DNA of 64,000 bases, from the sequence record MZ443783.1, one strand, 5' to 3'. Numbering within the stretch: position 1 is the stretch's first letter; the number at the start of each line of letters is the position of its first letter. Shown piece by piece: positions 1-54,290 of this stretch. The notes under the pieces were generated by a model. The model searched no databases. It had not been told where the DNA came from and saw nothing but the letters and a program-made list of their open reading frames with translations. The position numbers and the translations under genes are program-made.

Positions 1-2148
1 GAAGGTTCAACCGATGCCGAGTACGTTGCTGGTCAGTTGAAAACGTTCGGCGTTAAGGTCGACCCGAAAACTATCTTCGGTGTGCGTGACGATAAAGACG
101 GTAGCTGGATCGTTAAGCCTAAGATCCGTTACTACGCACCAGACAACGGTGAGCGCTTCTTCGATTATATGTCGATGCTGCGTCGTCGTCTGCCTGACAA
201 AATCGTTGAGAAAGACGGCACCGCGTATTACATCTTTGAGAACAACAAAGAGAACGCGAAGAAGCTGGCAGGCAAGTACGATAAGAAATGGTTCAGCCGT
301 AACAACCAGTTCAAAGTACCTGCGCCAGACGGCCACATGCAGGCGATGGTTATCGTTGACTCCTATCCTGCGATGATGCCAGATCAGGTCGATGACGATG
401 ACGGCTCGAAAGCAATGGCGTTGCAAGCGCGTATGTTCTCTGACGGCATCAAACGTTTCCGTGGTGGTATGCGTCGTAAGATGATGACCATCGTGGGCGT
501 TAACCAGTTGCGTCAGAAGCCTGCTGTGATGTTCGGTAGCCCTGAGTACGAGCCTGGTGGTGACGCGTTGAAGTTCTACTGCTTCGACCGTGACACTCTG
601 ATTCGTACTGACCACGGCGTATTGACTGCACCGCAGATTAAAGCGCTGATGGACGAAGGCAAAGAAGTTGCCGTTGAGTCGTTCGATGGTTATCAGAAAA
701 TCAACGGCGCATGGCTTGTCAATGACGCTCCGTTCCCGTTCGAACTGAATGCTGGTGGTCATGTGTATGTTGGCTCGGCCGAACATCGCCAGTTCACGTT
801 CATGCACGATCTGACTGCCGAAGGTACTCCAGTTCTGCGTCCTGAATGGAACACGCTGAATCAACTGGCGCAGTACCCAGAGCAGAAAGGTCAGTACGCT
901 GGTCTGCGTGTACCACCAGTTAAGGAACTGAAAGAGAATGTTCCTGACGCCTTCGATGAAGCCTCACAACTGGTAAGCAATCTGCTTGGAAACTGCGACC
1001 CTGTTAGCAAGCAACTGCCGCTGGTGACTCACGGTGATACCACCTACGCTGCAAACTGTCTGTTCATCGACACTGTGGGCGAAGACACCGACACTGGTTC
1101 GTTCTCGTTCTGGGTAGAGAAGTTACTGGCCATCGGCGTATTTGCTTACGCTGACGAAAGCGGTATCTGGATTCCAGGTCTGAACAAACACGAACTGGAA
1201 GCGGCTGTAGCGCAGGACGAACTCGGTGCGTTTGCTGGTATCAGTTTTGAAGCGACCTGTCGTCAACGTCAGACTCAAATGCTGACCGTGATTGTCGATC
1301 ACTTCCCTGAGCTGGTACGTTACGTTCTGGACTATCAGTTGCAGACGGGCAAAGACAAAATCTATCTGGCGCCTGAGAACGACTTCGCACAAGCGCTTGA
1401 CCTGATTCTGCACAAAGAGATCGCTGGTTACGACGACTACTATGACCTGCTGATGTTCCAGCTGGCGTATGTCGATGACTGGTACAACTTCGATTCCTCA
1501 ATTCTGCCTGTGCCGTTTACGCTTCGTGCGCTCAACGAACAGCGTGAGTTCTGGGACGTGAACGTTGAAGAAACGTCGGTAGTAATCACCAACGGCTTCG
1601 TCAGTCACAACAGCGACGTGCGTGTGCGACTGGCTTCTCGTGCGGTACCAGAAGGCTGGCCGAAACTGAAAGATGCTCCTGGCATCGTCGGTGAGAAGTC
1701 GGTAACAGTTGAAGGAGGTACTGACCGCTATCGCTTCATCGCTGCTAAGACCATCAAGAACAAGATGGGCGGCATCCCTAACCAGCAGACGTGGTTACGT
1801 TTGTGGGAAGCTGACGGTAACGGTGAAGCTCGCGGTTTCGACCCAGTGTTCGATACGTGGCACTACCTGAAAACTCTGGGTCTGGTCAATGGTAGCCGTA
1901 AGTCGTTCAAGCTGAAAGCTCCGTGCCCGCTCGCATCTGATGTTAAGATGGATTGGGATGACTTCCGTACACTCATCAACGGCAGCAAAGAACAAGTTGT
2001 TGGCGTGTGTAAGAAACTGAAAGTCAAACCTGCGGGCCTGCGTCTGTGGTGCTTCAAGTTCGTTCAGTCCACTAAGGGCAACGAAATGTTGAAGAACGCA
2101 ATCAGTAAGTCTGCCAAGAAGTCTGATGACGACGACGGCGACGAGTAA
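1..2148 (+). CDS. recA: RecA/UvsX recombinase, intein-containing, 5'-truncated by window edge
   Basis: Frame is open from base 1. RecA motifs VIVDSYPAM (Walker B), LQARMFS, VNQLRQKPAVMFGSPEYEPGGDALKFY|SDVRVRL and AAKTIKNK. Confidence 0.93.
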   Translation, partial: EGSTDAEYVAGQLKTFGVKVDPKTIFGVRDDKDGSWIVKPKIRYYAPDNGERFFDYMSMLRRRLPDKIVEKDGTAYYIFENNKENAKKLAGKYDKKWFSRNNQFKVPAPDGHMQAMVIVDSYPAMMPDQVDDDDGSKAMALQARMFSDGIKRFRGGMRRKMMTIVGVNQLRQKPAVMFGSPEYEPGGDALKFYCFDRDTLIRTDHGVLTAPQIKALMDEGKEVAVESFDGYQKINGAWLVNDAPFPFELNAGGHVYVGSAEHRQFTFMHDLTAEGTPVLRPEWNTLNQLAQYPEQKGQYAGLRVPPVKELKENVPDAFDEASQLVSNLLGNCDPVSKQLPLVTHGDTTYAANCLFIDTVGEDTDTGSFSFWVEKLLAIGVFAYADESGIWIPGLNKHELEAAVAQDELGAFAGISFEATCRQRQTQMLTVIVDHFPELVRYVLDYQLQTGKDKIYLAPENDFAQALDLILHKEIAGYDDYYDLLMFQLAYVDDWYNFDSSILPVPFTLRALNEQREFWDVNVEETSVVITNGFVSHNSDVRVRLASRAVPEGWPKLKDAPGIVGEKSVTVEGGTDRYRFIAAKTIKNKMGGIPNQQTWLRLWEADGNGEARGFDPVFDTWHYLKTLGLVNGSRKSFKLKAPCPLASDVKMDWDDFRTLINGSKEQVVGVCKKLKVKPAGLRLWCFKFVQSTKGNEMLKNAISKSAKKSDDDDGDE
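580..1611 (+). mobile_element. Intein (344 aa) in RecA
   Basis: Starts CFDRDTLI (block A), has SAEH (block B), ends NGFVSHN followed by +1 Ser. Removal restores ALKFY-SDVRVRL. Confidence 0.92.
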
Positions 2149-2190: not shown

Positions 2191-2619
2191 ATGCGCACTC
2201 AAATCTATACGGCTGATATCGTCAATCTGGAAACAGTGGTCGTTGACGAAGAAGGTCAAGAGACACGCAGTCCGACAATCGTTCCTAATCTCGAAGGCGA
2301 ACGTGATCTGACTGTTAGCACTCTCGGTACTATCATGGCTACCGTGACCGCTGAACCAAATCCTGACGCTCGCATGATCGTTCTGGTGTCACGCGCTCTG
2401 TTCCCTGCTTTCGCAGACCCTGAAGGTGACCTGTTCGATATCTTCGATCCGATCGAACGTGTTGCTGATGTTGTTGCTGGAAACGTCGGCAGCATTCTCG
2501 GTATGCAGGTAGTAATCAACGATAAGTCCGACGACAACGTTCTGGCTATCGCTGATGTTCTTGATACCGAAGCTGGCGTTACTATTCGCACCTTCGGCGC
2601 TGCGCTCGTTCGCGCGTAA
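2191..2619 (+). CDS. Hypothetical protein
   Basis: ATG 2191 after GGAG; no family motif recognised. Confidence 0.8.
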   Translation: MRTQIYTADIVNLETVVVDEEGQETRSPTIVPNLEGERDLTVSTLGTIMATVTAEPNPDARMIVLVSRALFPAFADPEGDLFDIFDPIERVADVVAGNVGSILGMQVVINDKSDDNVLAIADVLDTEAGVTIRTFGAALVRA

Positions 2620-2625
2620 GTAAAC

Positions 2626-2653
2626 TTGTGCGGGATAATGCTTTCCCGCACAA
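2626..2653. repeat. Perfect 10-bp inverted repeat
   Basis: TTGTGCGGGA-N8-TCCCGCACAA. Confidence 0.85.
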
Positions 2654-2660
2654 TCCCTCT

Positions 2661-2713
2661 CTCGATAGGCAATACGCCACGAGAAAACAAACCACTCGAT
2701 AGGCAATACGCCA
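2661..2713. repeat. 19-bp direct repeat, two copies, 34-bp period
   Basis: CTCGATAGGCAATACGCCA at 2661-2679 and 2695-2713. Confidence 0.95.
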
Positions 2714-2723
2714 GGAGTAATGT

Positions 2724-3425
2724 ATGAAAAAGATTCAACACGTAACACTTCCGACCGATGCACTCAACGGACTCATTCATGGCTATTACCACCATAGCAA
2801 AACCACTGATGAATTTTGCAGATCGTTGATCTATATTGACGTTACCGACCGCAGCGCCTCAGATGCGCTGTATGCTATATTGAAACGTGAGCCGACAAAA
2901 GGCATTGTCCCTATGGGATATGATTGCTTACGAGAAGCACGTGGGCACACTGCTCCAGCACAACTCGCAATCGTATTGTCCAACAACCTGTTGCATATAG
3001 ATAATACGAAGATGGCTGGAGGCGTACAGGCCATCTTTAACGCTCTGGCCAGAACCACGCACACCAACGATACTCAAATAACTGTGTACGGCGAGCCTGG
3101 AGTAAGTAAGATTCTCAACATAATGCGCGACATTCAATATAAAGAATATATTAACGCGCCTGAATCCGACATTGTGCTTGGCGACTTTAACCTTGAGTCG
3201 AACATGACTATAGACCATTTCGTTCACATGGCTATCGATCCTAAGTTCGAAGAAGCTATCCGCAATTCTCCTGCCACAGAATTTAAACTGGGCAGCAGTT
3301 TCATGTTCATGCACCCAGATGAATTGACTAAGGTTGTACGCATGGTCCGCCGTTGCAGTAAAATCTGCATCATGCACCCTGACATTCATCGCTATTACTT
3401 TGAGAACGTAATCTGTAAATACTAA
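2724..3425 (+). CDS. Hypothetical protein, paralog of 4575..5342
   Basis: GGAG RBS. C-terminal FMHPDEL..KICIMHPDIHRYYFE matches the pattern in 4575. Confidence 0.8.
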   Translation: MKKIQHVTLPTDALNGLIHGYYHHSKTTDEFCRSLIYIDVTDRSASDALYAILKREPTKGIVPMGYDCLREARGHTAPAQLAIVLSNNLLHIDNTKMAGGVQAIFNALARTTHTNDTQITVYGEPGVSKILNIMRDIQYKEYINAPESDIVLGDFNLESNMTIDHFVHMAIDPKFEEAIRNSPATEFKLGSSFMFMHPDELTKVVRMVRRCSKICIMHPDIHRYYFENVICKY

Positions 3426-3473
3426 TCACCAAACCGAACACATTGCTGTGTGTAGTCTAGCCCGACTTGGGCA

Positions 3474-3504
3474 GGGGAGAGCCGGATGGCCTCCCCATTT
3501 TTTT
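3474..3504 (+). terminator. Intrinsic terminator
   Basis: GGGGAG(A)GCC-GGAT-GGCCTCCCC followed by ATTTTTTT. Confidence 0.75.
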
Positions 3505-3527
3505 ATCTACACGCTGCGGAGAACAGT

Positions 3528-4529
3528 ATGTCTAAAACGAAGTCAACTCCACAGACCTTCCTCGACCTATTCTTAAAGGATGTTAAGCTCTTTCTGCCAA
3601 GGTTCGACAAAGGACTGGACGCGTACTTATTGAAGTGCAAAGGCAAGCCGGGTCCTTATGGCGTATCGCTTCATCAATACATGAAGTGGCTAAATCCTGT
3701 AGCGCGACTTCCTGCCAACGCAAGCGAAGTGTCTATCATCACATCAGGCTACCTGCATTACTTTTGGCAACTCGCTAAACCTAACTTTGTGTTGGAGCCT
3801 GTGCTTGTCAATCATTTGGTTGAGTCTGTGTTGCCTGACGAACTCCCGGCTGAGATTCTTCAACGTCTGCCTTACTGGAGTCAGTGGATTACGTTGCCTC
3901 TGCATCTGGTAAGCAAAGACAATATTCTGGATCTGGACTTCGATGGTGCTTTCGTTGGGTATACATCAATCGACAACAGACCTGCGCTTGTCCTTGCGGC
4001 ACCGTTTGTTTCCAACAATCAAAACATGCGCTCGAACGACTTCACACCGTTCGTTACATCGCATGTATTTCTTGATGCTCCTGTACGTCCAGAGTTTTTG
4101 GTAAGGAACAGCCACATACTCAACGTTGATGCAGACGCAATGAGCAAAGAAGCATACACCGTATTGATAATGAACATTCACCACTTCCTGGTGAAAGTGA
4201 TCAACTGTGTCATGTATATCTGCTCGCAACAGGAAGCACTGTATCAGGAAGGTCATTCTCAACCTAAGCCGCAGCGTCTAGGTAAGAGCTATCGCATCAC
4301 GCCACCGAAAGATGATCGCATGATCACGGTGGGCGCCGAGATGACCAAGATACTCAAAGACTTCGAAGCAGAAGTCGAATCGTGTGCTCGCGCTTTCAAT
4401 GGGCGTAAGCCGCATATACGAAAAGCGCACTACCACCACTTCTGGACAGGACCGAAAGTAGGAGTTCGTACCCTTGTCTGTAAGTGGTTGCCACCAAGTA
4501 TTGTTCGCGGCACCATCGTAGAGCAATAA
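3528..4529 (+). CDS. AcrVA2-like protein (anti-CRISPR/FinQ-related family)
   Basis: ATG 3528 after GGAG. LPDELPAEILQRLPYW and C-terminal KPHIRKAHYHHFWTG..KWLPPSIV match AcrVA2 motifs as recalled. Confidence 0.7.
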   Translation: MSKTKSTPQTFLDLFLKDVKLFLPRFDKGLDAYLLKCKGKPGPYGVSLHQYMKWLNPVARLPANASEVSIITSGYLHYFWQLAKPNFVLEPVLVNHLVESVLPDELPAEILQRLPYWSQWITLPLHLVSKDNILDLDFDGAFVGYTSIDNRPALVLAAPFVSNNQNMRSNDFTPFVTSHVFLDAPVRPEFLVRNSHILNVDADAMSKEAYTVLIMNIHHFLVKVINCVMYICSQQEALYQEGHSQPKPQRLGKSYRITPPKDDRMITVGAEMTKILKDFEAEVESCARAFNGRKPHIRKAHYHHFWTGPKVGVRTLVCKWLPPSIVRGTIVEQ

Positions 4530-4574
4530 CTTTTATCTCAACTCCACGTATGGGCGTTATGCCCGGAGGCTATT

Positions 4575-5342
4575 ATGAAATCTCGTGTACAACATGCGTA
4601 TATTCCTGATATGGAATCGTTTGACCCTTACGTCCGCTCTCTGTGCCATATGGCGCGAGCACTGGACACACCGAACTCTAACTACGGTAAGTTGAAACGT
4701 GTCGTGATCATCGGTACGTCGAAGCGTGTGGTTGAGGCATACGTTAAGCAGTTACTCAACACAAACACGCTGCCGCACACTCTCATTTGTTTTGGCGTAG
4801 ACGAACCGCCTATCAGTCACCGTGATTATACCTACGCTGGCGCCCACGTTGTGCTGATGCACGATCTGACCTACGTTGATAGCGGCACAATGGACAAGGT
4901 CGCCACGCGTGTGATTGAAATCATCGACAGCCTCAAACAGAAGCCCGGCGAAACAGAACTTAAAAATTCCGAGCTGTCTATGGTGTATTCGAATCCTCTG
5001 CTGTGGCGATCCATTATCGACTACGGTGCTTCCGTTTCTCTGCGCATGAATGGTAGCAATATTGAATACCGTAGCGGTCTGGTGTCGTCTATTGGCTTCG
5101 ATGCGTTGTTACGTTGTGAAAGCAATGCAGACTACCATGAACTTCGCGCTGATAAGATTACGATCGGTCTGGAGTTCTTCTGCGTACACACGGACTACCT
5201 GCTGTCAAAAGTACACAACCTGCTGTGGTCGCTCGCTTGTGACGACTGCAAATTCAAAAAGACGCACCGTATTATCTTCCATGAAGACTTCCGACGCTTA
5301 TTCTTCGAAGAATATCTCTTGAGGGACTTCCAGGGCTTTTAA
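4575..5342 (+). CDS. Hypothetical protein, paralog of 2724..3425
   Basis: GGAGG RBS. C-terminal FCVHTDYL..HRIIFHEDFRRLFFE. Confidence 0.8.
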   Translation: MKSRVQHAYIPDMESFDPYVRSLCHMARALDTPNSNYGKLKRVVIIGTSKRVVEAYVKQLLNTNTLPHTLICFGVDEPPISHRDYTYAGAHVVLMHDLTYVDSGTMDKVATRVIEIIDSLKQKPGETELKNSELSMVYSNPLLWRSIIDYGASVSLRMNGSNIEYRSGLVSSIGFDALLRCESNADYHELRADKITIGLEFFCVHTDYLLSKVHNLLWSLACDDCKFKKTHRIIFHEDFRRLFFEEYLLRDFQGF

Positions 5343-5415: not shown

Positions 5416-5676
5416 ATGTGCGAACGTAGCCATTTGCGGTTGAAGTACCTCGCACGGTCATCTGGCTGGTGCAATAATAAAGTAAACGCTTGTAGTGAGC
5501 GGAAGGCGAAGAATGTACAATGCGAAGAATTTTTGGCAGCGACCAAAGATTGCCGCAGCGAACAGAAGTCGTCCAGTGTTGTTTCATTCTTCAAAGGTCA
5601 TGAGCTGGTTGGTCAGGCTATATGGCATGAGATAGAGGGAGACAGCACACTTCAATTCCGGTTGCTACTTGCTTAA
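5416..5676 (+). CDS. Small Cys-rich hypothetical protein
   Basis: ATG 5416 after TGGAGA; terminator follows. Confidence 0.55.
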   Translation: MCERSHLRLKYLARSSGWCNNKVNACSERKAKNVQCEEFLAATKDCRSEQKSSSVVSFFKGHELVGQAIWHEIEGDSTLQFRLLLA

Positions 5677-5682
5677 CGACAG

Positions 5683-5723
5683 AGGGCCCATCAGAGTAAT
5701 ATCTGGTGGGCCCTTTCTTCTTT
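5683..5723 (+). terminator. Intrinsic terminator
   Basis: AGGGCCCATCAGA/TCTGGTGGGCCCT stem, then TTCTTCTTT. Confidence 0.75.
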
Positions 5724-8105: not shown

Positions 8106-8807
8106 ATGAAAGCAGCAAACTTTGACGTAGCATTTAACGCGAAAGACGAAGCAACCTTAAACGCATACGCAGCGAAAATTCTCGAAGCGCTTAACGCTCT
8201 GGGGCGTTATGACCTGAAGATCAATATCATCTTCGGCACTGACCCGTTCGGCGAACGCCCTGATTTTGTGAATGACCCGAACGGTTTTCGCGTTACACAG
8301 AACGGCGAAGAAATTTTTGATATCTACACGCCGACAGAAAAACAGATTGAAGGCGATGCGTCAGATGCTTTCATCTACGCTTCATGGGCCGACGGCGAAG
8401 CGCCGTGGGGTAAAGACGTGTCAGACAATGACATTGCAGAAATCGCCGAACACCTGAACGCTGCAATCCCGCGTGTCGGCCGTGTATTCAACGAATCTGA
8501 TCGTCAGATGCTGCAAAAACTCGCCGACACTTTGAACGCTCGTATGGATCGTACCGATGCGCGAGTGATCGTAACGAACGGCGCCGAAGACGATCTCATT
8601 GTTATGGTTGTTGGTTACGACGAAGAAGAAGATGAAGTCAGTGATGAATACGGCTTCTTCTTGAGCCTGCCGTACACCGATGAAGGCGGCACAGACGAGA
8701 AATACAGTCTGCACTACGCTGGCTACCCAGGCGTGAACGACCACTCATATAGCTCTGCTGACCTCGACGAGATCTCAGAAGAAATCGAAGCGCTCGATCT
8801 GCTCTAA
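8106..8807 (+). CDS. Acidic hypothetical protein
   Basis: First gene after P2; GAGG-loop RBS. Confidence 0.85.
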   Translation: MKAANFDVAFNAKDEATLNAYAAKILEALNALGRYDLKINIIFGTDPFGERPDFVNDPNGFRVTQNGEEIFDIYTPTEKQIEGDASDAFIYASWADGEAPWGKDVSDNDIAEIAEHLNAAIPRVGRVFNESDRQMLQKLADTLNARMDRTDARVIVTNGAEDDLIVMVVGYDEEEDEVSDEYGFFLSLPYTDEGGTDEKYSLHYAGYPGVNDHSYSSADLDEISEEIEALDLL

Positions 8808-43041: not shown

Positions 43042-44649
43042 ATGGCACGTCTGGAAACTAACACTAACCTGGTTGGCAAAACTATCATCCTGCTGAACGG
43101 CACCAAATCTAAAATCGAAGATGCAATCGCGTCTGGCTATAAAGTGAAGGGCCAGTCAAAACGTATCGCCACCCGCTGCGTCATCAAAGAAGGTTCTCAC
43201 TTCCGCGAAATTGAGCGCATGAACATGAGCCAGCTGGAAGATACTGGTGAAGGTTACGTTAAACTGAAAGATGCGAAAGCGTCTGGTAAGAAAGCTGGCG
43301 CGAAAGAGAAAGAGCCGAAAGCGTCTGGCAAGAAGACTGGCGGCAAAGCTACGGCCAAAGAGAAAGAGCCGAAAGTTCGCCGTAAGTCTTCTAAAGAGCA
43401 AGGCGATGAGTATCAGGCTCTGGCGAAAGAAATCATCAAAGGCGGCAAACGTGCTGCGCCAGTTGAAATCGACGAGATCGATGGCGACCTGACTGATACC
43501 GTTGCTCAACGTCTGGTAGACGTACTGAACAATACCGAAATCGCCAAGCTGTGCGCTGACAACAAAACGCCGATCGCTAACGCCATCGAAGTTGCTTACG
43601 GCGCTGAGTTCGCACCTGAAACAAACGTCATGCAGATCACGCTGAGCCTGCAATACGCGAAGCCTGTTAAAATGCAGTCATCTTCTACGCTGGAAAACGC
43701 CGATGCAATCGCGGCCCGTGCTAAGAAAATGATCGCGCCGAAGCTGTCTAAGAAAATCGCTAAGGCGATTCGTGAAGCGTTCGGCCTGGAAGACGCCGCC
43801 GAGCTTGAAGCTGGTACCGTGTTGTTGTCTGACGGCGCTGAGTTCGTCTTCTGCGGCGAGAGCGCGAAGCACCTCGGCAAAGCGCTGCTGTATGTTGTAG
43901 AGACCGACAAGTTCAAATCTGTTGTAGGCTCTGCGCTGGCTGATTACGAAATTGATCAGGAAGAAGAAGAGGAAGAAGAGGAAGACCTCGAGGAAGAGGA
44001 GTCTGAGGAGGAAGAAGAAGAGGAGGAGGAGGAAGAAGAGGAGGAGGAAGAAGAAGACGGCGAAGAAGAAGACGGCGAAGAAGACGACGGTGAGTCTGAC
44101 GATACTGAATACCAGTATGTGGCCGTGACCAAAGATCATACCAACATGATCAACAAGAAAGTCACCGCTAAGTATCACGCCGCGCTGGCTGAGCGCTTCA
44201 ACACAACCGAAGAAGCTCTGGTCCCTGGCCTCGTGTTGACTGACGGCGAAACAACGTTCGCTTACCTGGGCTGTGATAGCAAAGGTGGTCTGCTGGTCAT
44301 CGACGTTGAAGCTGAGGAGAACGAAGAAGACGTTCTGCTGTATAGCAAAGCCGATATCAAAGAACTGACCGACTTCAATCCTGTGCTGGATGACGTAGAA
44401 GGCGCTGCCGATGATGAAGGCGAAGAAGAAGACGGTGAAGAAGAAGACGGTGAAGAAGAAGACGGTGAAGAAGAAGACGGTGAAGAGGAAGAAGACGACG
44501 AAGACTTCGACTTCGATGATGTTCCTGCCGTTGACCTGAAAGATCTGTCCGAAGACGAACTGCGTGACCGTGTCGTTGAAGCCGGCCTGACCACCGTGCG
44601 TAAAGCTGACAAAATGAACGCGGCTCAACTGCGCAAGCTCCTGAAATAA
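43042..44649 (+). CDS. Multidomain protein with poly-Glu/Asp tracts
   Basis: First gene after P10. Two internal repeats of a beta-rich domain, long E/D runs, C-terminal HeH-like module. Confidence 0.9.
   Translation: MARLETNTNLVGKTIILLNGTKSKIEDAIASGYKVKGQSKRIATRCVIKEGSHFREIERMNMSQLEDTGEGYVKLKDAKASGKKAGAKEKEPKASGKKTGGKATAKEKEPKVRRKSSKEQGDEYQALAKEIIKGGKRAAPVEIDEIDGDLTDTVAQRLVDVLNNTEIAKLCADNKTPIANAIEVAYGAEFAPETNVMQITLSLQYAKPVKMQSSSTLENADAIAARAKKMIAPKLSKKIAKAIREAFGLEDAAELEAGTVLLSDGAEFVFCGESAKHLGKALLYVVETDKFKSVVGSALADYEIDQEEEEEEEEDLEEEESEEEEEEEEEEEEEEEEEDGEEEDGEEDDGESDDTEYQYVAVTKDHTNMINKKVTAKYHAALAERFNTTEEALVPGLVLTDGETTFAYLGCDSKGGLLVIDVEAEENEEDVLLYSKADIKELTDFNPVLDDVEGAADDEGEEEDGEEEDGEEEDGEEEDGEEEEDDEDFDFDDVPAVDLKDLSEDELRDRVVEAGLTTVRKADKMNAAQLRKLLK
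44419..44478 (+). repeat. 15-bp tandem repeat x4 (GEEED)
   Basis: GG(C/T)GAAGAAGAAGAC repeated four times. Confidence 0.95.
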
Positions 44650-48115: not shown

Positions 48116-51112
48116 ATGTCATCTAATACTAATAATCTGGGCGCTGCTGCAACATTCGGCTCTGAGACTCAAAAGCAATTGAACGACCAACAACGTCGTG
48201 CTCATTCTGCTGAGTCGGGCCACGTAAACAAATGTACCATCGTTGTACTGACTTCCCTGAATGCCAACAATCGTTTCTCGTACATGTCTGCCGACGAGCA
48301 ACTGCGTGAACACGATATCGTGGGCAAAGTAATGGACCGTCTGCCTGGTTTGATCGAACGTGCGTCTGGCGTTTCTTCTGACCCAAACAGTGCGTACCAC
48401 ATTCTGCATCCGAACAACGGCGTGCCGACCCGCATCGACGAGCGCATCAAAGTCGGTGAAGCTGATTCTGTCATCGTTTCATATACTGTAAATAAAGCAG
48501 TGTCAGAAATGTATGGCAGTTTGTCACTGGCTCTGTTTAGTGCTGGCGAAGGTGATATCGCAGACCTCGCGGCTGAGTATGGTATTCACTCCATCTCAAT
48601 CGTTGAAGAGGCGAAAGCGCCTGACTACATCAAAGCTCTTGCCGAACAGGTAGAAGCTCTGAAAATTGTAAATCTCACTAGCATTGACGAAGCTGATGGT
48701 GCTCTTGAGAAGCCTGTCATTAATTACAGCGCTCTGCCGGGCAATCCAATCAACGTACTGTCTGGCGCTGTTCGTACCTTCATCATGCAATCTATCAGCG
48801 GCGAAGTCTTTGCTGCAATTCCAAATAACGGAGAATTGAACGTGAAACAACCTACCAACGCAACGCCGGTTAATCTGGACGAAGACTTCGACGCAGAAGA
48901 CGAAGTGGTGGACCAGCAGGGCGAAGGCGAAGAAGGCGAAGAGCCTACCGGTACTGACCTGTTCGGCTACAAAGCAGAAGCGCTGGACATTGGCCAGATG
49001 ACCGAAGCGCTCGAAGCTCTGTCGTATGACGTTAGCGCGATGGACGAAGCAGGCATTCGTGAGTCGTTCGAAACTGAGCAACAAATCTGGCTGGAAAAGA
49101 ACGACAACGCCGAGTCTGATGAAGACGAAGACGATGGCGAAGAAGTTGAAGACGACGAAGACGAAGCTGGCGATGACGAACCTCTGAACCCGGCTCTGTA
49201 TCTGGCTCACCTGCTGTCTGCTGATATGCTGGACCGCCGCGCTCTGAAAACTCTGGTGCTGTCGCAGGACCTGAAGGTGTACAAGTCTGACACCGAAGAA
49301 ACTCTGACAACCAAGTTGTTGGAATCGGTTGAAGACGCAACCGAAGAAGAACTGGTCGAAATGCTGACCGTGTTCGTTGGCCTGCTGGACGAGAAAGAAA
49401 TTGATTGTCCGAACATGCGCGCCGCTCTGGCTTCTGATGAAGATTCCGAAGAAGATTCTGAGGAAGAAGAAGACGAAGAAGAGGAGTCTGAGGAAGAAGA
49501 CGAAGACGAATCTGCTGTTGCCGATGAAGACGAAGTGCAACATCAAATCGACGCCGTTGAAGATCCCCTCGACTACTTCCAGTTCCCGGGCGGCGCACTG
49601 ACTGCCGAGCAACGTATCGCTGCTGTCGAAGCGATGGGCGAAAACACCGAAGGCATGTCTATCGTGCAGGTGATGAAAGCGTTCCAGCGTATTCAAACCC
49701 AGACCAACGAAATCGACGTTGAGTCCGAAGGCGAAAGCAACGTTGCAGAACTCGAAGCGCTGCTCGGTCAGTACGACGAAGCGACCGTTCAGCATGTAGC
49801 TGAAAGCCTGGGCATCCTCGTTGACGAATGCGAAACCGTTGACGATATGATCGAAGCGATTGCTAACGGCGGTAGCGAAGACGACTTCGCGGCTGTTGAA
49901 GAAATCGCAACCAACTACGGTATCGACCTGTCTGAAATTGCAGACGGTGATGATCTGGACTTCGTTGATGCGCTGCTGGCCGTGCTGCCTGCGTTCCTGT
50001 CTGACGACGAGCAGGAAGAAGAAGAAGAAGAAGACGACGCCGAAGAAGACGAAGCGGAAGAAGTTGAAGAAGTCGCTGATGTTGACACCGACGTTGTTGA
50101 AAACGATAGCCTGCGTTTCGTCAAAGACGTTAACACCGAAAACTCTGCCGGCCCGATGCTGTCTGTTGAAATGGACCAGTCGCTGGTGATTAACTTCACT
50201 TTGACTGACGGTGATACCTACAGCGAAATCGAATCTGAGCTGTCTGATATCAACGGCGTAAACTACCGCTATCCGTTCAACATGGGTAAAGCTGGTAAAG
50301 CACCTGGCGCGATGCTGCTGCCTGCCCAGTCTCTGATTGAGATTACTGAGCGCACTCGCACTACTCGCTTCCTGGCCGATCCGAAAACGTTCGACGTTGC
50401 ACTGTGGGCGCAGAGCCTCGAAGCAACTCTGGCTGCTGAAATCGCTGCTGTCCTGTATGAAGGCCGCATCGAAGACGGTCAAGACCCAAGCGAAGCGGGC
50501 ATTGTTGTCGGTGACTTCCTGGACGAAGAGGAACTGGAAGCGGCCACTGAACTCGGTCACATCGACCCTGAGCAGTTCGACGAAATGCAAGGCGACCACC
50601 TGCCTATCTCCAGCCTGTACAGCGCTCGTTCTCGTGTGCGTCCAGTGCGTGTAGATACCGCTTACGTTGCTCTGCATACCACCGTGCTGAACGTTGCAGT
50701 CCCTGGTTTCTGGGGCGATGCGCCAGTACAACGTATGGTTCAGGCCGCTGTCAACCGTGTCATTACAATGGCGCAGGACGTTGAAGGCATCAAAGTGTAC
50801 GCAGGATTCACTATGGAATCTGCCGCACTGCTGAACAACGACCGCCTGTTCGAAGCGCTGTCTACGCTGCGTGAGATCGAGAACGTCCAGTCTTACTCTG
50901 CTGCTGACGCTGCGAACTTCGACGATGCCGAAGACGTGATCGAAGTGGCAGGTGCGCTCGACTCTCGTGACCTGCCACTGTCTATCCTGTCAAGCGGTCT
51001 GGCTGCTGCGACCTTTGACAACGGCGGTGACCTGACCGTTCTGGTTCCATGCTCTGTCGTCGAAGAAGAAGACGAAGTGGACGAAGACGAAGACGACGGC
51101 GAAGACGAATAA
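48116..51112 (+). CDS. 998-aa extremely acidic multidomain protein
   Basis: GAGG-loop RBS; several E/D tracts separating small helical modules. Confidence 0.9.
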   Translation: MSSNTNNLGAAATFGSETQKQLNDQQRRAHSAESGHVNKCTIVVLTSLNANNRFSYMSADEQLREHDIVGKVMDRLPGLIERASGVSSDPNSAYHILHPNNGVPTRIDERIKVGEADSVIVSYTVNKAVSEMYGSLSLALFSAGEGDIADLAAEYGIHSISIVEEAKAPDYIKALAEQVEALKIVNLTSIDEADGALEKPVINYSALPGNPINVLSGAVRTFIMQSISGEVFAAIPNNGELNVKQPTNATPVNLDEDFDAEDEVVDQQGEGEEGEEPTGTDLFGYKAEALDIGQMTEALEALSYDVSAMDEAGIRESFETEQQIWLEKNDNAESDEDEDDGEEVEDDEDEAGDDEPLNPALYLAHLLSADMLDRRALKTLVLSQDLKVYKSDTEETLTTKLLESVEDATEEELVEMLTVFVGLLDEKEIDCPNMRAALASDEDSEEDSEEEEDEEEESEEEDEDESAVADEDEVQHQIDAVEDPLDYFQFPGGALTAEQRIAAVEAMGENTEGMSIVQVMKAFQRIQTQTNEIDVESEGESNVAELEALLGQYDEATVQHVAESLGILVDECETVDDMIEAIANGGSEDDFAAVEEIATNYGIDLSEIADGDDLDFVDALLAVLPAFLSDDEQEEEEEEDDAEEDEAEEVEEVADVDTDVVENDSLRFVKDVNTENSAGPMLSVEMDQSLVINFTLTDGDTYSEIESELSDINGVNYRYPFNMGKAGKAPGAMLLPAQSLIEITERTRTTRFLADPKTFDVALWAQSLEATLAAEIAAVLYEGRIEDGQDPSEAGIVVGDFLDEEELEAATELGHIDPEQFDEMQGDHLPISSLYSARSRVRPVRVDTAYVALHTTVLNVAVPGFWGDAPVQRMVQAAVNRVITMAQDVEGIKVYAGFTMESAALLNNDRLFEALSTLREIENVQSYSAADAANFDDAEDVIEVAGALDSRDLPLSILSSGLAAATFDNGGDLTVLVPCSVVEEEDEVDEDEDDGEDE

Positions 51113-52779: not shown

Positions 52780-53553
52780 ATGGCTAAAGCAACCGCAAAT
52801 ACCGCAGCAATCGTTCTGGCTAAAATGCTGGGCGTAGTTATCGAAAACGCCGACGCGAAAGAAATCGCAGCAATCCTGAAAGAAGCCGGTCTGACTGTCT
52901 CTGGCGGTAAAGTGGTAAAAGCTGAAAAAGGCGGTAAAGCTGCTAAAGGCAAAAAGGCCAAAGCACCTACCGTTGCTGAAATCGTCGCTGCCATCAAGGA
53001 CGAAGAAGAACTGGACATCTCCGGCGTAAGCGAAGATGACCTGCGCGCCGCTGTAGTTAAAGCGAAACTGTCCACCGCTAAGAAAGCAAAAGCGCTGGAC
53101 GAAGATGACCTGCGCGATCTGCTGAACGAAAACCTGGGCGGCGAGTCCGATGAGGACGAAGACGAGGACGAAGACGAGGACGAAGACGACTCGGACGACG
53201 AAGATGAAGACGGCGACGACGAAGACGAAGACGACGAAGACTCTGATGAAGAAGAAGAGGACGACGAAGACGACGAAGACGGCGACGACGATGAAGAAGA
53301 AGACGAAGACGAGGATGAAGATGAGGACGAAGATGAAGATGATCTCGACCTCGACTCCCTCGACAAGAAAGAGCTGTTAGCTCTGGTCCTCGAACACAAG
53401 CTGGCGCCGGCTAAGAAAGCCAAGAAAATGGACGAAGATGAACTGCGCGAACTGTGCGAAGAACACTTCGGCGGCGAAGATGACGAAGACGAAGATGAGG
53501 ACGAAGACGACGAAGACTTCGACGATGAAGACGAAGACGAAGACGACGAATAA
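52780..53553 (+). CDS. Poly-Asp/Glu protein with two HeH-like repeats
   Basis: SEDDLRAAVVKAKL..KAKALDEDDLRDLL and DKKELLALVLEHKL..KAKKMDEDELRELC, separated by ~60 consecutive almost-all D/E residues. Confidence 0.9.
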   Translation: MAKATANTAAIVLAKMLGVVIENADAKEIAAILKEAGLTVSGGKVVKAEKGGKAAKGKKAKAPTVAEIVAAIKDEEELDISGVSEDDLRAAVVKAKLSTAKKAKALDEDDLRDLLNENLGGESDEDEDEDEDEDEDDSDDEDEDGDDEDEDDEDSDEEEEDDEDDEDGDDDEEEDEDEDEDEDEDEDDLDLDSLDKKELLALVLEHKLAPAKKAKKMDEDELRELCEEHFGGEDDEDEDEDEDDEDFDDEDEDEDDE

Positions 53554-53771: not shown

Positions 53772-54290
53772 ATGTCCAAGAAAGCAATTAGCGGCCTGAA
53801 CAAAGAAATCCGCGCAATCGAAAAATCTGAAAAAGCTCTGACCAAAACCGCTGGCGAAATCACCAAACAGTCCGAAGCGCTGGCTGCTCGTCGTGCTGGT
53901 CTGAGTGCCCAGGTCGAAGCTCTGCAAAACGACGGCGCGGCTCCTGCTGCTAAACCTGCTAAAGCGAAAGCCGCTAAAGCAGAGAAAGCTGCTAAGCCTG
54001 CCAAAGCTGAAAAAGCTGGCAAAAAAGCTAAAGCTGAAAAAGCTGAAAAACCTGCTAAGGCTAAAAAAGCCAAAGCTGAGAAAGCTGAGAAGCCTGCTAA
54101 AGCAGACAAAAAAGCAAAAGCCGCCAAAGCTGAAAAGCCGGCCAAAGCTGAAAAAGCTGGTAAGAAAGCTAAAGCAGAAAAACCTGCTAAAGCTGAAAAA
54201 GCCGGCAAGAAAGTGAAAGCAGACAAAGCTGGCAAAGCCGGTAAGAAAAGCAAAAAAGAAGCCGAAGACTTCGACTTCGATATGGAATAA
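53772..54290 (+). CDS. Histone H1/AlgP-like Lys-Ala-Pro repeat protein
   Basis: N-terminal coiled coil, many (P)AKAEKA(GKK) repeats, acidic tip EDFDFDME. Confidence 0.8.
   Translation: MSKKAISGLNKEIRAIEKSEKALTKTAGEITKQSEALAARRAGLSAQVEALQNDGAAPAAKPAKAKAAKAEKAAKPAKAEKAGKKAKAEKAEKPAKAKKAKAEKAEKPAKADKKAKAAKAEKPAKAEKAGKKAKAEKPAKAEKAGKKVKADKAGKAGKKSKKEAEDFDFDME

Follow-up and report, generated by a model that had tools for sequence, protein, structure and literature searches.

The gene and its source

The window analysed here is a stretch of 64,000 nucleotides (nt) taken from the genome of Erwinia phage pEa_SNUABM_28 (MZ443783.1, 267,143 bp, genus Alexandravirus), with 100% identity to that record. 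The host is Erwinia amylovora, and window base 1 corresponds to base 203,144 of the record. At 3528-4529 on the + strand lies an intact open reading frame (ORF), which coincides exactly with the GenBank coding sequence pEaSNUABM28_00252, 333 amino acids (aa) long and labelled "hypothetical protein". Judged by sequence comparison, its product is a near full-length relative of the anti-CRISPR protein AcrVA2 and of the plasmid fertility inhibitor FinQ, with a likeness far beyond chance. A sequence-only reading of the window had proposed a full-length AcrVA2-like protein in an enterobacterial-type jumbo phage, and the 267-kb Erwinia phage agrees with the proposed source. The gene and the parts of its product are as follows.

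3528..4529, + strand: AcrVA2/FinQ-family gene, intact ORF of 333 aa, with ATG at 3528 and stop codon at 4527-4529
3518..3523, + strand: Shine-Dalgarno sequence GGAGAA, 4 nt ahead of the ATG at 3528, read from the sequence
3528..3752, + strand: N-terminal stretch, residues 1-75, hypervariable and mostly specific to the jumbo-phage clade
3753..3932, + strand: moderately conserved core, residues 76-135, with W80, E90, the invariant P107 and the P115-x-W117 motif
3933..4382, + strand: variable middle region, residues 136-285, of which 136-215 are the most variable of the whole protein
4383..4526, + strand: conserved C-terminal module, residues 286-333, with H296-x-R298-x-x-H301-x-H303-x-x-W306-x-G308 (codons 4413-4451) and W320

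A longer, 347-aa version of the ORF, starting from the ATG at 3486, was rejected, as this codon lies within the loop of an intrinsic terminator hairpin. Together with the Shine-Dalgarno sequence at 3518-3523, this argues that the start at 3528, used both by GenBank and by the sequence-only reading, is correct. No second copy or C-terminal-only paralog was found in the window with the family profile (E ≤ 10), and the gene is single-copy in the phage record too.

The N-terminus of the protein reads Met-Ser-Lys-Thr (window 3528-3542). The tripeptide Ser-Lys-Thr is shared with LSKT, the motif on nascent Cas12a that AcrVA2 reportedly reads. This likeness of three residues carries no statistical weight, and the relatives carry Ser-Lys-Ser.

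Homology to AcrVA2 and FinQ

Searched alone with phmmer against all PDB chain sequences, the 333-aa protein matched AcrVA2 (7ci1_A; E = 7.1e-5, chain residues 65-316 of 323) and had no other significant match. The window protein was aligned with 14 relatives, all taken from annotated records of phages and plasmids (alignment A1, 15 sequences). The profile of this alignment matched AcrVA2 at E = 1.2e-29, over chain residues 34-163 and 197-318, and the next best PDB match was at E = 0.82. Near full-length homology to AcrVA2, as first read from the letters, is thus borne out by both searches.

The suggested kinship with FinQ was recovered as well. Plasmid genes annotated as 'protein FinQ' were matched by tblastn over query residues 79-323 (E = 2e-6 to 5e-4), and these FinQ relatives carry every invariant motif residue in alignment A1. 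Identity of the window protein to FinQ, to plasmid relatives and to non-syntenic phage relatives was about 19-24%. Every peptide string quoted in the sequence-only reading is present in the translation of window 3528-4529 (+), and the His motif that it pointed out is intact in the alignment with AcrVA2 and the relatives.

The protein also matched PHROG 6160 (function unlabelled) at E = 3.2e-49, over profile positions 45-321 of 322. Pfam-A, NCBIfam and PADLOC gave no match to it, and Pfam and NCBIfam gave none for any of the 15 aligned homologs, FinQ included. The gene is called hypothetical in every source because these three libraries have no model for it.

Functional residues and the C-terminal module

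In AcrVA2, the residues H286, R288 and H291 are required for down-regulation of Cas12a mRNA and dispensable for binding, and the substitutions W79A and D89A weaken the protein (Marino et al., bioRxiv 10.1101/2022.11.29.518452). Tool alignments placed H296, R298 and H301 of the window protein at H286, R288 and H291, and W80 at W79. E90 stands at the position of D89, a conservative change. Ten residues were invariant in all 15 aligned sequences: H296, R298, H301, H303, W306, G308, W320, P107, P115 and W117. Of the 150 best library representatives, 125 have the motif H-x-R-[RK]-x-H-x-H-x-x-W.

Conservation was concentrated at the C-terminal end. Residues 286-333 had 33-95% identity in all relatives compared, and they were the best-conserved segment in 12 of the 14 aligned relatives and in 10 of 10 library representatives. 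The regions outside this module were only about 10-25% identical to distant family members, and for the presumed recognition parts the figure was 10-20%. Residues 1-75 had 10-24% identity to relatives beyond the window's own allele class, and most cellular and plasmid relatives aligned only from about residue 80 on. Compared with other allele classes, identity was 7-21% for residues 136-215 and 17-34% for residues 216-285.

AcrVA2 is described as binding to ribosomes and polysomes through its C-terminal part (2026 editorial on the published version, PMC13728456). A cellular RNase recruited by AcrVA2, which reportedly does not cleave the mRNA itself, degrades the 3' part of the mRNA that is not yet translated (PMC13728456). 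By its alignment, the window protein has the C-terminal module, which is the sequence prerequisite of such nascent-chain-triggered mRNA decay.

Family size and spread

An exhaustive phmmer scan over 1.84 billion representative proteins returned 1,775 representative clusters at E ≤ 1e-3, only 7 of them at E ≤ 1e-30. The median length among the top 150 library representatives was 333 aa. A motif-seeded scan of one genome per species found 204 loci across many phyla and groups, including Pseudomonadota, Desulfobacterota, Acidobacteriota, Planctomycetota, Bacillota, Chloroflexota, Deinococcota and Leptospira. The best of these loci was 27% identical, and nearly all aligned only over residues about 80-326. 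Erwinia was not found among the top 80 of the 204 loci.

Family relatives occur on phages and on plasmids, and 52 of 75 plasmids were predicted to be conjugative. Further relatives among Enterobacterales jumbo phages are gp126 of Erwinia phage RisingSun, Klebsiella phage FBKp24 and its kin, and Asesino. In several further phages and in Acinetobacter plasmids, the match was confined to the C-terminal module. Six contigs were found in IMG/VR, five of which matched isolate genomes already in the comparison in length and coordinates; no new environmental relatives were found there.

The RisingSun gp126 homolog (locus L010, 4764-5765) is labelled 'putative mycothiosynthase' in GenBank. This name looks like a mis-annotation because no Pfam or NCBIfam family matches.

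A hypervariable slot with a constant C-terminal module

The same genomic slot was found in nine jumbo phages, summarised in the analysis as five named genera and one unclassified phage: Alexandravirus (five phages), Sasquatchvirus Y3, Yoloswagvirus, Rivsvirus SNUABM_5 and the unclassified SNUABM_46. The gene order is SSB, a RecA/UvsX-like recombinase of ~840 aa, one or two small genes, the AcrVA2-like gene and usually a gene of ~253 aa. In Dickeya phage JA29 (Salmondvirus) and Yersinia phage fHe-Yen9-02, the family profile detected no AcrVA2-like ORF up to 7 kb from the RecA-like gene. The AcrVA2-like gene is therefore accessory, since the slot in these two phages holds other genes.

Within the slot, the AcrVA2-like gene was the most divergent in the neighbourhood. 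Its product was 73, 74, 33, 33, 30, 28, 28 and 27% identical to those of eight relatives, with RecA-like proteins 55-95% identical. Alexandravirus alone has at least three allele classes (SNUABM_28/Alexandra/AD1, SNUABM_40 and phB78), with at most 33% mutual identity and RecA-like proteins 84-94% identical. AD1 and SNUABM_40, for example, share 93% identity in the RecA-like protein and 33% in the AcrVA2-like protein. The phB78 allele is nearer to that of Y3, a phage of another genus (56%), than to any allele of its own genus. These allele classes come from phages isolated on one host species in one country. DNA likeness between the window and SNUABM_40 ends at 3504 and returns at 4427, ~100 nt ahead of the stop codon.

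The closest alleles, those of SNUABM_28 and SNUABM_22, are 96% identical with 12 amino-acid differences, eight of which lie within residues 128-215. The ratio of nonsynonymous to synonymous substitution rates (dN/dS) between them was 0.08. The AcrVA2-like gene is thus constrained and under purifying selection, and positive selection between close alleles was unsupported at this ratio. Synonymous divergence (dS) was raised locally, to 0.21 in the AcrVA2-like gene and 0.19 in the gene downstream of it (g253), compared with 0.05-0.11 in genes outside that pair. In these comparisons, the diversity looks like that of old divergent alleles of the recognition part exchanged by recombination, neither decaying nor simply positively selected.

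Neighbouring genes and transcription

The features around the AcrVA2-like gene are the following.

1..2148, + strand: RecA/UvsX-like recombinase, 3' part (843 aa; Pfam RecA at 9.6e-17, PHROG 97 UvsX-like), the conserved left anchor
2191..3425, + strand: g250 (142 aa) and g251 (233 aa), the upstream portion of the hypervariable island
3436..3507, + strand: upstream non-coding junction, with hairpins at ~3439-3453 and 3460-3472, a terminator stem at 3474-3496 and a T-run at 3498-3504
4530..4574, + strand: conserved downstream junction, with a small hairpin and the GGAGG ribosome-binding site of g253 (alignment A3), no terminator
4575..5342, + strand: g253 (255 aa), probable co-transcribed downstream neighbour, after a 45-nt gap with no terminator
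5416..5676, + strand: g254 (86 aa), conserved (45-95% identity among relatives), the final gene ahead of the terminator
5681..5716, + strand: strong intrinsic terminator with a 15-bp stem, from the terminator scan, closing the presumed AcrVA2-like/g253/g254 unit

The hypervariable island covers window 2191-5342, from the RecA/UvsX-like gene to g254. Here g250, g251, the AcrVA2-like gene and g253 are replaced or show far more rapid divergence than the flanks. The genes g250 and g251 had 31-93% identity, or were absent, in relatives with a RecA-like gene 55-95% identical. For g253, identity among relatives was 37-87%, and Yoloswag and SNUABM_5 lack the gene. GC content is slightly lower in the island, 46-49% vs 51-53%.

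The terminator scan found no terminator-like site on the + strand between 4529 and 5681. The AcrVA2-like gene, g253 and g254 probably form one transcription unit, judging from this layout, and would be expressed by read-through or from an unrecognised phage promoter. Nine neighbouring proteins were compared with Pfam and PHROG, and only the RecA/UvsX-like gene had a match. Searches of g251 and g253 against PDB sequences gave nothing significant. A paralogy of g251 with the 233-aa gene at 8106-8807 was rejected (E = 4.9). The RecA/UvsX-like recombinase itself is unusually long, with 843 aa here and 1,167 aa in fHe-Yen9-02, and the Pfam RecA match spans only ~80 residues.

The terminator hairpin at 3474-3496 had a folding energy of -25.3 kcal/mol (z -3.4). 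The upstream junction was ~90% conserved among the five Alexandravirus phages, and it could also be recognised in Y3 and SNUABM_46, where its stems are retained. This element of ~70 nt (3436-3507) is conserved despite the hypervariable coding sequence on either side, and Rfam has no family that it matches. Its role may be that of a regulatory leader or attenuator, and it may also form the left recombination junction of the cassette. A role as a repeated phage promoter was rejected, with one exact copy in the window and 8 near-matches vs 6.1 expected.

The annotated genes of the whole 64-kb window are all on the + strand and all labelled hypothetical. The window contains no tRNA genes, and an Rfam search of it gave no gathering-level match; a sub-threshold match to RprA (25.5 bits where 70 are required, E = 0.39) was put down to chance. 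Low-complexity coding repeats were seen in the genes at 43042-44649, 48116-51112, 52780-53553 and 53772-54290, with D/E-rich runs at about 43.9-44.5 kb, 49.1-50.1 kb and 53.1-53.6 kb and K/A-rich runs at about 52.5-54.3 kb.

Proposed function and alternatives

The reading we favour, at a probability of roughly 0.6, is that of a functional AcrVA2/FinQ family member: a two-part reader that would silence a target other than Cas12a co-translationally, with allele cassettes swapped between phages. It builds on features that the sequences show: homology to the family, a conserved motif, purifying selection, hypervariability of a cassette-like kind, an accessory distribution and the layout of the operon. 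By homology with AcrVA2, the C-terminal module (residues ~286-333, with H296, R298 and H301) would link the protein to ribosomes engaged in translation and set off decay of the mRNA. Specificity would be seated in the variable part, so that residues 1 to ~285 (N-terminal and middle) would recognise the nascent N-terminal peptide of one specific target. Synthesis of this target would be shut off co-translationally, and its mRNA would be degraded by a recruited host RNase. Swapping of the recognition part as a cassette between the conserved junctions would leave phages of one genus with probably different targets.

Alexandravirus phages of Erwinia are strictly lytic (PMC9686651). The target should be a protein made during infection, because such phages cannot use a biogenesis block to remove proteins that already exist. 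It could be a host defence component that is induced or rapidly turned over, or the product of a rival mobile element. A target other than Cas12a, as the sequence-only reading supposed, is most likely. E. amylovora has been described with a CRISPR-Cas system of type I-E and a type I-F remnant array only, in a paper that does not mention Cas12 (PMC9004355), and the majority of family members are found where there is no Cas12a; both points make a Cas12a target unlikely. A literal type V-A anti-CRISPR, silencing Cas12a in the phage's hosts as AcrVA2 does, is for these reasons extremely improbable, even with the AcrVA2 homology and the functional His/Arg motif kept. It is further disfavoured by the low identity, ~10-25% to distant members outside the C-terminal module and ~20% overall to FinQ and plasmid relatives. 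In addition, the Pfam/PHROG scan of the neighbours recognised no acr or aca-like partner, such as AcrVA1, beside the gene.

The remaining alternatives differ from the favoured reading in target or in activity. An action like that of FinQ, directed at the genes of a plasmid, prophage, satellite or co-infecting phage, shares its mechanism with the favoured reading and differs only in target class. The family member FinQ inhibits transfer of the F plasmid and reduces tra mRNA, and inhibition of biogenesis suits proteins that are newly expressed during infection. The many very different allele classes that co-circulate on one host species in one country fit diverse rivals somewhat better than a uniform host. 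However, the gene is not in the plasmid-borne setting of a fertility inhibitor; it is part of a lytic phage genome and has recombination genes as neighbours, unlike finQ in the leading or transfer region of plasmids, and we consider an exclusively rival-directed role unlikely. That the window protein shares a fold with AcrVA2 but has another activity is decidedly unlikely. The His/Arg cluster would then be a catalytic or metal site acting without ribosomes, or the protein would merely bind and block its finished target. AcrVA2 does bind mature apo-Cas12a and an internal peptide too, its decay mechanism is only partly resolved, and the RisingSun homolog bears an enzyme-like name. Against this, 'mycothiosynthase' is unsupported, with all 15 homologs, RisingSun gp126 included, lacking a Pfam or NCBIfam match; the binding of AcrVA2 to Cas12a was shown to be non-inhibitory by itself; and AcrVA2 reportedly does not cleave mRNA itself (PMC13728456).

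Regulation of the phage's own expression, by co-translational shut-off of, for example, early phage proteins, could be imagined from the fixed position that the gene keeps beside replication and recombination genes across five genera (nine phages), and from the location within a long same-strand block. One would expect a timing regulator to be universally present and conserved, whereas the AcrVA2-like gene is the most divergent locally and is missing from the homologous slot of the sister lineages, Dickeya JA29 and Yersinia fHe-Yen9-02, which makes this role less likely. The relatives on plasmids and on the chromosomes of many phyla argue for a role in conflict instead, and we regard an own-timing function as very unlikely.

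Several points weigh against silencing of a non-Cas12a target as we propose it. The AlphaFold model from the single sequence was too poor for a comparison with the three-domain fold of 7CI1 (mean predicted local distance difference test score, pLDDT, 33.9; predicted template modelling score, pTM, 0.26). E. amylovora is a genetically uniform species, which fits poorly with allele diversification driven by the host. The absence of Cas12a from the hosts is taken from the literature, and the way in which AcrVA2 itself triggers decay has been only partly worked out. Moreover, the gain of a strictly lytic phage from inhibiting biogenesis is unclear, since a block of biogenesis leaves untouched the defence proteins that the cell already contains at the onset of infection, as noted by Marino et al. 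themselves (bioRxiv 10.1101/2022.11.29.518452).

An extension of the favoured reading is more tentative and, in our view, somewhat less probable than an even chance. In jumbo phages of Erwinia and Dickeya, the slot that follows the RecA/UvsX-like gene might hold an allelic series of nascent-peptide readers, made of the constant C-terminal module and interchangeable cassettes of ~300 residues that phages would exchange at the two conserved junctions, each class silencing a different host or rival protein.

Novelty and significance

AcrVA2 is, to our knowledge, so far the sole bacterial protein that reads a nascent peptide to have the mRNA of that protein destroyed. For homologs in hosts without Cas12a, the known targets are limited to old FinQ observations. 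The sequence-only reading had presented co-translational silencing of a new target as novel, which was overstated. Non-Cas12a targets had already been proposed for AcrVA2 homologs, with FinQ as precedent, in a study that reported ~1,800 orthologs, carried by plasmids and megaphages and for the most part found where Cas12a is lacking (Marino et al., bioRxiv 10.1101/2022.11.29.518452). Al-Shayeb et al. noted that huge phages encode AcrVA2-like proteins. The present finding extends current understanding and does not change it, because the general idea of other targets is already published.

Two results are new here, both from comparison of sequences: the assignment of an unannotated gene and its syntenic relatives to the AcrVA2/FinQ family, and the hypervariable slot of cassette-like build, whose junctions are conserved and whose C-terminal module is constant. 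Together they offer a cultivable case: in related lytic phages of one host species, a fixed slot is occupied by at least three alleles that diverge deeply and share the constant C-terminal module. Such a case lends itself to the search for new targets and, by comparison alone, to locating the determinants of specificity. If the allelic series is real, it would be a ready-made set of non-Cas12a targets of co-translational silencing and a view of how specificity evolves. Alexandravirus phages are under development as biocontrol agents of fire blight (PMC9686651). Recognition of a probable counter-defence gene improves the annotation of their genomes, which is almost entirely "hypothetical".

Comparison with known systems

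AcrVA2 from a Moraxella bovoculi prophage (7CI1/7CI2) is of similar size, 322-323 aa vs 333 aa, and is alignable over chain residues ~34-318. Both proteins have the W, P-x-W and H-x-R-x-x-H-x-H-x-x-W-x-G motifs, and both are encoded on mobile elements. They differ in that the single-sequence score is weak (E = 7e-5) and that essentially no sequence relationship is seen over the first 75 residues and the middle. The carrier here is a strictly lytic jumbo phage, whereas that of AcrVA2 is a prophage, and the host here is reported with type I-E CRISPR, not Cas12a.

FinQ, the fertility inhibitor of IncI1-type plasmids, belongs to the same family and is the precedent for a target other than Cas12a. 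Its identity to the window protein is 19%, and finQ loci adjoin trb, exc and hok genes, whereas the AcrVA2-like gene follows phage recombination genes.

Huge phages and Shewanella phage vB_SbaS_Y11 (ORF43) also carry AcrVA2 homologs in hosts without known Cas12a; vB_SbaS_Y11 is lytic, and its host has a type I-E system. The reports on these phages give presence only, whereas the gene described here lies in a syntenic hypervariable slot, with several allele classes within one genus.

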